Source of the DNA: Podarcis filfolensis
Taxonomy: Eukaryota
Strand: one strand, 5' to 3'
NCBI GenBank assembly: GCA_964270895.1
Contig: OZ185437.1
DNA length: 64,000 bases
Below are positions 22,476-22,799 of the stretch, piece by piece. The notes beneath the pieces were generated by a model. That model was not told where the DNA came from. It searched no databases and was given only the letters and a program-made list of their open reading frames with translations. Within the stretch, counting starts at the first letter, position 1. Every line of letters starts with the position of its first letter. Position numbers and translations under genes: made by a program.

Positions 22476-22564
22476 GCTGCTTGGTGGTTTTATGCTACTG
22501 ATTGCAGACGAACAAACCTGACAGCCACTTGGCGATATTATGAAAGTATTCTTCCACCCCTTAG
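22476..22564 (+). CDS. KCNQ5: Candidate alternative KCNQ5 exon 8a (KCNQ2/3/4-type helix-A exon), probably mutually exclusive with 8b
   Basis: tttccttttcacaag|GCT...CTTAG|gcatgt; 89 nt, phase 0 to 2, open frame AAWWFYATDCRRTNLTATWRYYESILPPL(R). 19/30 identical to the human KCNQ4 segment as recalled ([30 protein letters not shown]). Needs a GC donor; no transcript evidence available. Confidence 0.8.
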
Positions 22565-22704
22565 GCATGTATCAGTGCTACAAATGACACAAAAAAGCCA
22601 TGACTTGTATTGGTATACTAATATGCTTTTCTTTTCTTTTTTGTTTCATCCCCTGCTCCCTCTTGCCTTTATTTCCCTTTCTTCATCATATATCCTACAT
22701 GTAG

Positions 22705-22799
22705 TGTGTATGGCGTAGTTATGCAGCTGATGAGAAATCCGTTTCCATTGCTACCTGGAAGCCTCATTTGAAGGCCTTGCATACCTGCAGCCCAACAAA
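22705..22799 (+). CDS. KCNQ5: KCNQ5 exon 8 (8b, canonical KCNQ5 type)
   Basis: catgtag|TGT...AA|gtaggt; 95 nt, phase 0 to 2; [31 protein letters not shown](K). Confidence 0.97.

Follow-up and report, generated by a model that had tools for sequence, protein, structure and literature searches.

We found that the KCNQ5 (Kv7.5) gene of the lizard Podarcis filfolensis contains, within the 64,000-nucleotide stretch of DNA analysed here (the window), two homologous exons, 8a and 8b, that encode alternatives for the same 30-32 residues directly after the 'LIQ' of exon 7. The stretch that is swapped takes in the distal two thirds of helix A, which is an IQ-type calmodulin-binding helix, together with the ATW ('TW') segment, and extends into the first part of the A-B linker. 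Probably, these two exons are the squamate copy of an ancient, tandem-duplicated and mutually exclusive KCNQ5 exon pair. According to the comparisons described below, 8a is orthologous to the 8a exons of KCNQ5 models from birds, frogs, fish and sharks. By the same comparisons, 8a appears to keep the form of helix A found in KCNQ2, KCNQ3 and KCNQ4, and 8b appears to be the KCNQ5-specific form, that of the human KCNQ5 structures.

Anatomy of the exon pair in the window

Motif scans and stop-to-stop translations placed most of the KCNQ5 gene in the window, on the + strand. Exons for S4, S5 and the pore, at about 7.4, 9.6 and 15.95 kb, respectively, come before exon 7 (18623-18718). This exon breaks off at the IQ of helix A, in phase 0, and its donor is CAA/gtaagt (slashes mark exon boundaries). 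Downstream of the pair lie exon 9 (25270-25296; 27 nt, (K/R)KEQGEASS), which is the first downstream partner of 8a or 8b, an alternative exon of 57 nt (30093-30149; 19 aa, KLYSNKQKLFRMYTSRKH) and the KCNQ5-specific exon 10 (35132-35352), which comes after 8a in all 8a-type models. These three were found where an earlier note on this DNA had put them. Two further exons, near 41.7 and 42.6 kb, precede the last exon (43206-44159), again all on the + strand. A Gekko kuhli record flagged UNVERIFIED_CONTAM shares 91% identity with the last exon; for the representative of a cluster that contains Gekko japonicus KCNQ5, the figure is 88%. Both exon 9 and the 57-nt exon are intact in the window; in models from other species each is optional, and each is seen together with 8a in frog, bird, gar and shark.

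Exon 8a (22476-22564, + strand) is 89 nt long and runs from phase 0 to phase 2. It reads ttttcacaag/GCTGCTTGG...CCCCTTAG/gcatgt and encodes AAWWFYATDCRRTNLTATWRYYESILPPL(R), a distal helix A and TW segment of the KCNQ4/2/3 type. Exon 8b, the canonical exon 8 (22705-22799, + strand), is 95 nt long, has the same phases, ends in (K) and is followed by the donor AAA/gtaggt; its residues match human KCNQ5 of solved structures at 31 of 31 positions. The two are separated by an intron of 140 nt (22565-22704), and both lie between exon 7, which ends at 18718, and exon 9, which begins at 25270. The sequence thus bears out the description of an intact 89-nt exon 140 nt upstream of the canonical exon 8. 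Two features were absent from the earlier note: the 8a donor (22565-22570) is a non-canonical GC and not GT (TTAG/GCATGT), with a GCAUG inside it, and the 8a acceptor is AAG. The note had called this acceptor good; the acceptor region (22440-22475) indeed has a tract of 75% pyrimidines and an intact AG, but AAG looks weaker than the CAG present at this site in birds, frog and teleost. AAG acceptors are functional though uncommon. Inside the intron is a branch-like motif, TACTAAT (22616-22622). Its A, at 22621, lies 57 nt downstream of the 8a donor, and 84 nt separate it from the 8b acceptor. The motif is followed by a pyrimidine tract (82%; 22626-22704) that leads up to 8b.

Comparison with proteins of known structure separated the two exons. 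In a PDB search, 8a matched helix A of KCNQ3 (5J03, E 1.1e-5), KCNQ4 (7VNP, E 1.3e-5) and KCNQ2 (6FEG, E 5.8e-5), and far more poorly canonical KCNQ5 (E 0.27). A direct BLASTP of 8a against 8b gave 7 identities in 20 positions (E 0.009 for the single comparison). With the common W..YA.D...ATW skeleton and the equal phases, this agrees with the proposal that the exons are homologous duplicates. In solved Kv7 structures, both fall on distal helix A and on the TW segment after it, as expected if, as had been claimed, the segment completes helix A.

Because 8a and 8b are each 3n+2 long, a transcript with both exons or with neither loses the frame. When spliced in silico, the combinations 7-8a-9-10, 7-8a-10 and 7-8a-9-alt-10 were all open. 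The combination 7-8a-8b met its first stop, a TGA, at 22769-22771, and 7-9 and 7-10, with neither 8a nor 8b, stopped immediately. The frame shifts anticipated in the earlier note are therefore real, and given the GC donor, exclusivity is enforced by the frame, with single inclusion only. The further statement that exactly one exon must be used holds with the GC donor, but not with a possible, weak alternative donor, the GT at 22569-22570, 4 nt downstream of the GC donor. Splicing at this GT makes a 93-nt 8a that is in frame with 8b (..SILPPLRH/CVWRSY..), permitting both, and out of frame with exons 9 and 10.

Exon 8a in other vertebrates

In hundreds of NCBI and UniRef KCNQ5 models, exon 7 is followed by an 8a-type exon and then by exon 9 or 10, which confirms the guess that automated non-mammalian models may contain 8a. 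These models, whose XP entries are mostly automated predictions, range over teleosts, catfishes, gar, sharks and rays, coelacanth, frogs, a turtle and many birds. A HMMER search of the whole library, with the last exon as the query, yielded KCNQ5 representatives, among them P0039 and P0014, in which an 8a-type exon lies between NPAA.LIQ and the KCNQ5-specific downstream exons; P0011, a near relative of P0014, has 8b. Two region-restricted searches were run, with P0039 and the frog isoform P0123 as seeds, and the best 120 matches of each were taken. Among the matches listed, LIQ followed by an 8a-type exon was found in at least 193 proteins, with 78 distinct peptides. The carriers include a gar (P0119), sharks and rays (P0128, P0130, P0135, P0179 and P0223), the coelacanth (P0190), frogs such as Xenopus tropicalis (X4, P0183), a turtle (P0200) and birds (P0176, P0212 and P0213). 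No mammalian representative with 8a was among the matches listed in these searches. T18 and W19 were present in all 78 distinct peptides and A17 in 74 of them; lizard 8a has the corresponding TATW.

In one cluster of bird proteins, made up of 19 RefSeq isoforms from genera such as Falco, Anas, Columba and Oxyura, the 8a-type exon was present in 15 of the 15 members listed. Here, 8a reads ASWRFYSTD[AT]SRTNLTATWRYYESILPPL and continues either into R-KEQGE, with exon 9 next, or into S-QKLSF, with exon 10 directly; the isoforms of this cluster combine 8a with every arrangement of the downstream optional exons. Both forms can come from one gene, as in Gouania willdenowi, in which isoform X2 has 8a (P0039) and isoform X5 has 8b (P0112). 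Evidence for the splicing of 8a comes from P0077, an uninterrupted ORF of 2931 nt in a teleost Logan contig of 3341 nt, built from a sequencing run, in which 8a, without 8b, is joined to exon 9 (...PPFR/KEQGE...). As KCNQ5 extends over 85 kb in a teleost genome, a contig with an intact ORF of this length must be mRNA. The junction that it reads therefore shows 8a spliced at the AG/GC boundary. The contig also speaks against the notion that the 8a isoforms of birds, frogs and fish have no transcript behind them.

We aligned the genomic module formed by 8a, the intron and 8b between the lizard, two birds and a frog. The bird and frog contigs were reached via genomic ORFs through 8a; a search with the window ORF that runs through 8a returned only two bird ORFs and one frog genomic ORF. 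In 8a, the lizard is identical to bird 1, bird 2 and frog at 89, 84 and 88% of nucleotides, and bird to frog at 90%. The corresponding figures for the intron are 85, 78 and 73%, with 82% between bird and frog; those for 8b are 97, 96 and 97%, with 95 of 95 nt the same in bird and frog. Among lizard, birds and frog, there is little or no variation in the donor AG/GCATGTATCA, the TACTAAT motif and the pyrimidine tract that precedes 8b. The same module was found in a third bird through a scan of metagenomes. The contig in question, JGI Ga0065711_1001930 (53.6 kb), is bird genomic DNA, presumably from host contamination. The 8a-8b intron of a teleost, Enoplosus armatus, has a length of 253 nt and the donor CAG/GCATGTATC, as in tetrapods, with a CTAAT about 95 nt from the donor and then about 150 nt of pyrimidines. 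The GC donor AG/GCATGT is thus invariant in the lizard, three birds, frog and teleost, and has therefore been retained since the split between teleosts and tetrapods.

Substitutions in 8a also carry the mark of a coding sequence. Between tetrapods and teleosts, pS was 0.76-0.90, which is near saturation, and pN was 0.21-0.25, for a pN/pS of about 0.25-0.31; between bird and frog, pN/pS was 0.17-0.24. Comparisons of lizard 8a with the others gave 0.39-0.48, above the bird-frog value, on counts that are tiny. Since pN is well under pS both between tetrapods and teleosts and between bird and frog, these substitution patterns indicate that 8a is a protein-coding exon under purifying selection, less tightly constrained than 8b, for which pN/pS was 0-0.11 with an unusually low pS. 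The pS of 8b is only 0.25-0.30 even between tetrapods and a teleost; together with the full nucleotide identity of bird and frog, this suggests that 8b may be constrained beyond its protein, for example by splicing signals.

The lizard copy of 8a and competing readings

Lizard 8a is intact. It is identical to bird 8a at 25 of 30 residues, with LTATWRYYESILPPLR shared exactly and the C-terminal 18 residues the same, and to human KCNQ4 at about 19 of 30; it is thus a KCNQ5 orthologue and not imported KCNQ4. Upstream of the shared end, it differs at otherwise conserved places. The conserved Arg of the IQxxxR motif is absent, a departure from the helix A pattern: position 4 is a Trp (TGG, 22485-22487), but each of the other 78 distinct 8a-type peptides has the Arg there, as do all the 8b peptides collected and KCNQ2, KCNQ3 and KCNQ4 in the PDB. 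The codon is CGG in birds and frog, so that the change from CGG to TGG is a CpG transition; it may have become fixed, may be polymorphic or may be an error. Position 7 is Ala (Ser in 77 of the 78 distinct 8a-type peptides), and positions 10 and 11 are Cys and Arg, the latter unseen at position 11 in any of the 78.

Lineage counts, polarised with the frog as the outgroup, assigned 5, 10 and 3 changes to the lizard lineage for 8a, the intron and 8b, respectively, and 3, 2 and 0 to the bird lineage. On the lizard lineage, the changes in 8a are mostly non-synonymous, and all three of those in 8b are synonymous. As this lineage has changed faster everywhere, 8a is not specifically accelerated at the nucleotide level. 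A squamate protein model or ORF with 8a was not found in the model clusters or in the ORF search. The one squamate model seen, isoform X3 of Heteronotia binoei (P0234), has 8b, and the gecko clusters hold one 8b model and otherwise C-terminal fragments only. This is weak evidence for absence, because clustering at 90% identity hides isoforms and the database lacks short ORFs.

These features bear on whether 8a might be a relic in this lizard or in squamates, rarely or never spliced in, with its sequence held mainly for the control of 8b splicing. The derived R4W change in the IQ motif and S7A, both at otherwise invariant positions, would fit such a loss of function, as would the weakening of the acceptor from CAG to AAG, the excess of non-synonymous changes in 8a over an 8b with three synonymous changes out of three, and the failure of our searches of clusters and ORFs to return a squamate 8a isoform; nucleotide conservation of 8a could partly reflect a role in splicing control of 8b. 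Yet the ORF, the pyrimidine tract, the AG of the acceptor and the GC donor are all intact in the lizard, the 18 C-terminal residues are unchanged from birds, and the 5 changed sites of 8a are proportionate to the 10 in the intron and the 3 in 8b, while the lack of squamate models counts for little for the reasons given above. On balance we regard a relic as unlikely. That the window holds a squamate copy of an ancient exclusive pair remains our preferred reading, and it seems somewhat likely that lizard 8a is used in transcripts. If so, this lizard may make a Kv7.5 with a working helix A of the KCNQ4 type.

A very improbable alternative is that both exons are used jointly, through the GT at 22569, to give a Kv7.5 with tandem helix A segments. 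The frame works with a 93-nt 8a, the GT is conserved, being inside the conserved GCATGT, and some models are built in this way (P0177, P0109, P0113, P0121 and P0125). However, CAT/GTATCA is a poor match to a donor, without G at -1 or +5, the 93-nt form is out of frame with exon 9 or 10, and the RefSeq isoform sets and the mRNA contig use the AG/GC boundary (..PPLR/KEQGE..). Most of the models in question are 'hypothetical protein' entries or older single-model annotations that look as if they had been built ab initio. Smaller still, close to nil, is the probability that 8a arose from faulty assembly or is KCNQ4 sequence that was brought into KCNQ5, the mis-assembly that the earlier note had itself raised as an objection. 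Such an origin might be suspected because, in the PDB search, 8a scored better against KCNQ4 than against canonical KCNQ5, but it is effectively refuted by the independent genomic contigs, in which three birds, the frog and the teleost have the same arrangement of 8a, intron and 8b with the intron sequence conserved, and by the closer match of lizard 8a to bird KCNQ5 8a (25/30) than to KCNQ4 (about 19/30). An ancient pair of KCNQ5 exons of which one is used at a time thus accounts best for the window.

A possible helix A switch and its relatives

If the exon pair works as we propose, the splicing machinery would select one of 8a and 8b, and transcripts with both or with neither would presumably be removed by nonsense-mediated decay. 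The choice is probably regulated, via the weak but conserved GC donor (AG/GCAUGU), the TACTAAT motif and the long pyrimidine tract before 8b. The donor with its GCAUG, the distal branch motif and the tract could be where tissue-specific factors act, as they do in other neuronal exon pairs. The outcome would be two Kv7.5 isoforms that are unlike in their regulation by calmodulin, Ca2+ and PIP2. More tentatively, and with the balance leaning against it, the switch may date to the common ancestor of jawed vertebrates and toggle non-mammalian Kv7.5 between a KCNQ4-like and a KCNQ5-specific calmodulin/PIP2 interface; the lizard Trp would then be a natural helix A variant with altered calmodulin coupling and not the sign of a decaying exon.

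Several other accounts of the intron were considered and set aside. The sequence at 22569 (GTATCA or GTATCC) resembles a U12 5' splice site, but the mRNA contig and the RefSeq models use AG/GC, and by inspection there is no well-placed U12 branch motif before 8b. Steric block cannot be the universal cause of exclusivity: the branch-like A is 57 nt from the donor in tetrapods, but the teleost intron, at 253 nt, is long and has its CTAAT about 95 nt from the donor; such a block is therefore not general. A conserved RNA structure that bridges 8a and 8b was likewise rejected, the fold of 22545-22725 having a non-significant z of -1.74.

Among annotated isoforms, we compared lizard 8a with the 8a-type models of Nyctibius grandis (X4, XP_068271099.1), Anas platyrhynchos (X2), Columba livia (X3), Xenopus tropicalis (X4), Phyllobates terribilis (X2), Lepisosteus oculatus (X10), Gouania willdenowi (X2) and Mustelus asterias (X2). 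It resembles them in its position after exon 7, its length of 30 residues, its GC donor, the short intron before 8b and its joining to exon 9, the 19-aa exon or exon 10. It differs from them in the Trp for Arg, the Ala for Ser, the unique Cys and Arg at positions 10-11 and the AAG acceptor. Outside KCNQ5, the closest counterpart is exon 8 and helix A of KCNQ4 (Kv7.4; 7VNP, 7BYL and the AB-calmodulin complex 6B8L). The alignment of 8a with residues 356-385 of KCNQ4 covers the full 30 residues, and the boundary at the end (...R) is the same. Unlike KCNQ4, however, to which its identity is about 63%, 8a is flanked by KCNQ5-specific sequence (NPAASLIQ and KEQGEASS).

Similar arrangements are known from other channels. 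CaV1.2 exons 8/8a and NaV exons 5N/5A and 18N/18A are, like 8a/8b, tandem duplicates of nearly equal length that swap a functional segment; these pairs are ancient and typically regulated by neuron or tissue, often under PTB or Rbfox. In contrast to them, 8a/8b swap a cytoplasmic calmodulin-binding helix instead of a transmembrane segment, their exclusivity is enforced by the frame (3n+2 each), and the upstream exon has a conserved GC donor. In mammals, KCNQ5 variants with the optional 27-nt exon 9 and the optional 19-aa exon were reportedly described by Lerche and by Schroeder in 2000, and RefSeq KCNQ5 isoforms 1-5 involve the same two optional exons. Both are in the window (25270-25296 and 30093-30149), and in the models of other species both combine freely with 8a; unlike 8a/8b, they are cassettes of the A-B linker and do not replace helix A. 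To our knowledge, mammalian KCNQ5 isoforms differ solely in these linker cassette exons.

Calmodulin docks on Kv7 channels mainly at helix A, and in KCNQ2 and KCNQ1, disease variants that disturb assembly, trafficking and the control by Ca2+ and PIP2 cluster in this helix. A conserved switch to a KCNQ4-like helix A in Kv7.5 would be a ready-made experiment on the contribution of this helix, and one that can be tested in zebrafish, Xenopus and chick, whose gene models contain 8a.

A description of the KCNQ5 8a/8b pair was not found in the full-text literature searched, in which the matches concerned other genes. KCNQ5 does not appear in the accessible portions, text and supplements, of a human catalogue of tandem-duplicated exons, nor in the accessible part of a human survey of mutually exclusive exons, where KCNQ2 is the only member named. 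Tandem-duplicated, mutually exclusive exons of ion channels are a well-known ancient kind, reviewed in the paper with the human tandem-duplicated-exon catalogue. The 8a/8b pair is therefore new to the literature searched and at the same time already present in public automated gene models; for this lizard alone, 8a is the orthologue of an already annotated exon. The switch seems to be absent from the annotation of mammals; this would account for the apparent lack of studies on it.

The annotation of KCNQ5 in other species has some peculiarities around 8a. In P0148, a KCNQ5 model of Poecilia formosa, 8a is followed by a segment, ..ELISLLEHIKGKKNGLKPLGIRK.., which we take to resemble the alternatively spliced exon 9 of KCNQ4; this would hint at another shared ancient exon. 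Regular-expression and tblastn searches of the lizard window did not find a counterpart of this segment. Several models wrongly fuse 8a with 8b or read through the intron between them. Fusions by way of the 93-nt form of 8a occur in Tinamus guttatus, Gambusia, Channa, Pampus and Knipowitschia, and read-through of the 8a-8b intron in cichlids, Stegastes and Neosynchiropus. Both kinds are probably annotation artefacts; for the fusions, the poor donor and its lack of use by the mRNA contig and the RefSeq sets speak for this. In addition, the 8a isoforms of teleost kcnq5 are often named 'KQT member 4 isoform X..' at NCBI, while isoforms from the same chromosome are named 'member 5', as for P0058 and P0060 of Poecilia reticulata and P0086 and P0087 of Scophthalmus maximus. 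The KCNQ4-like helix A of 8a may be what flips the automatic name to KCNQ4.
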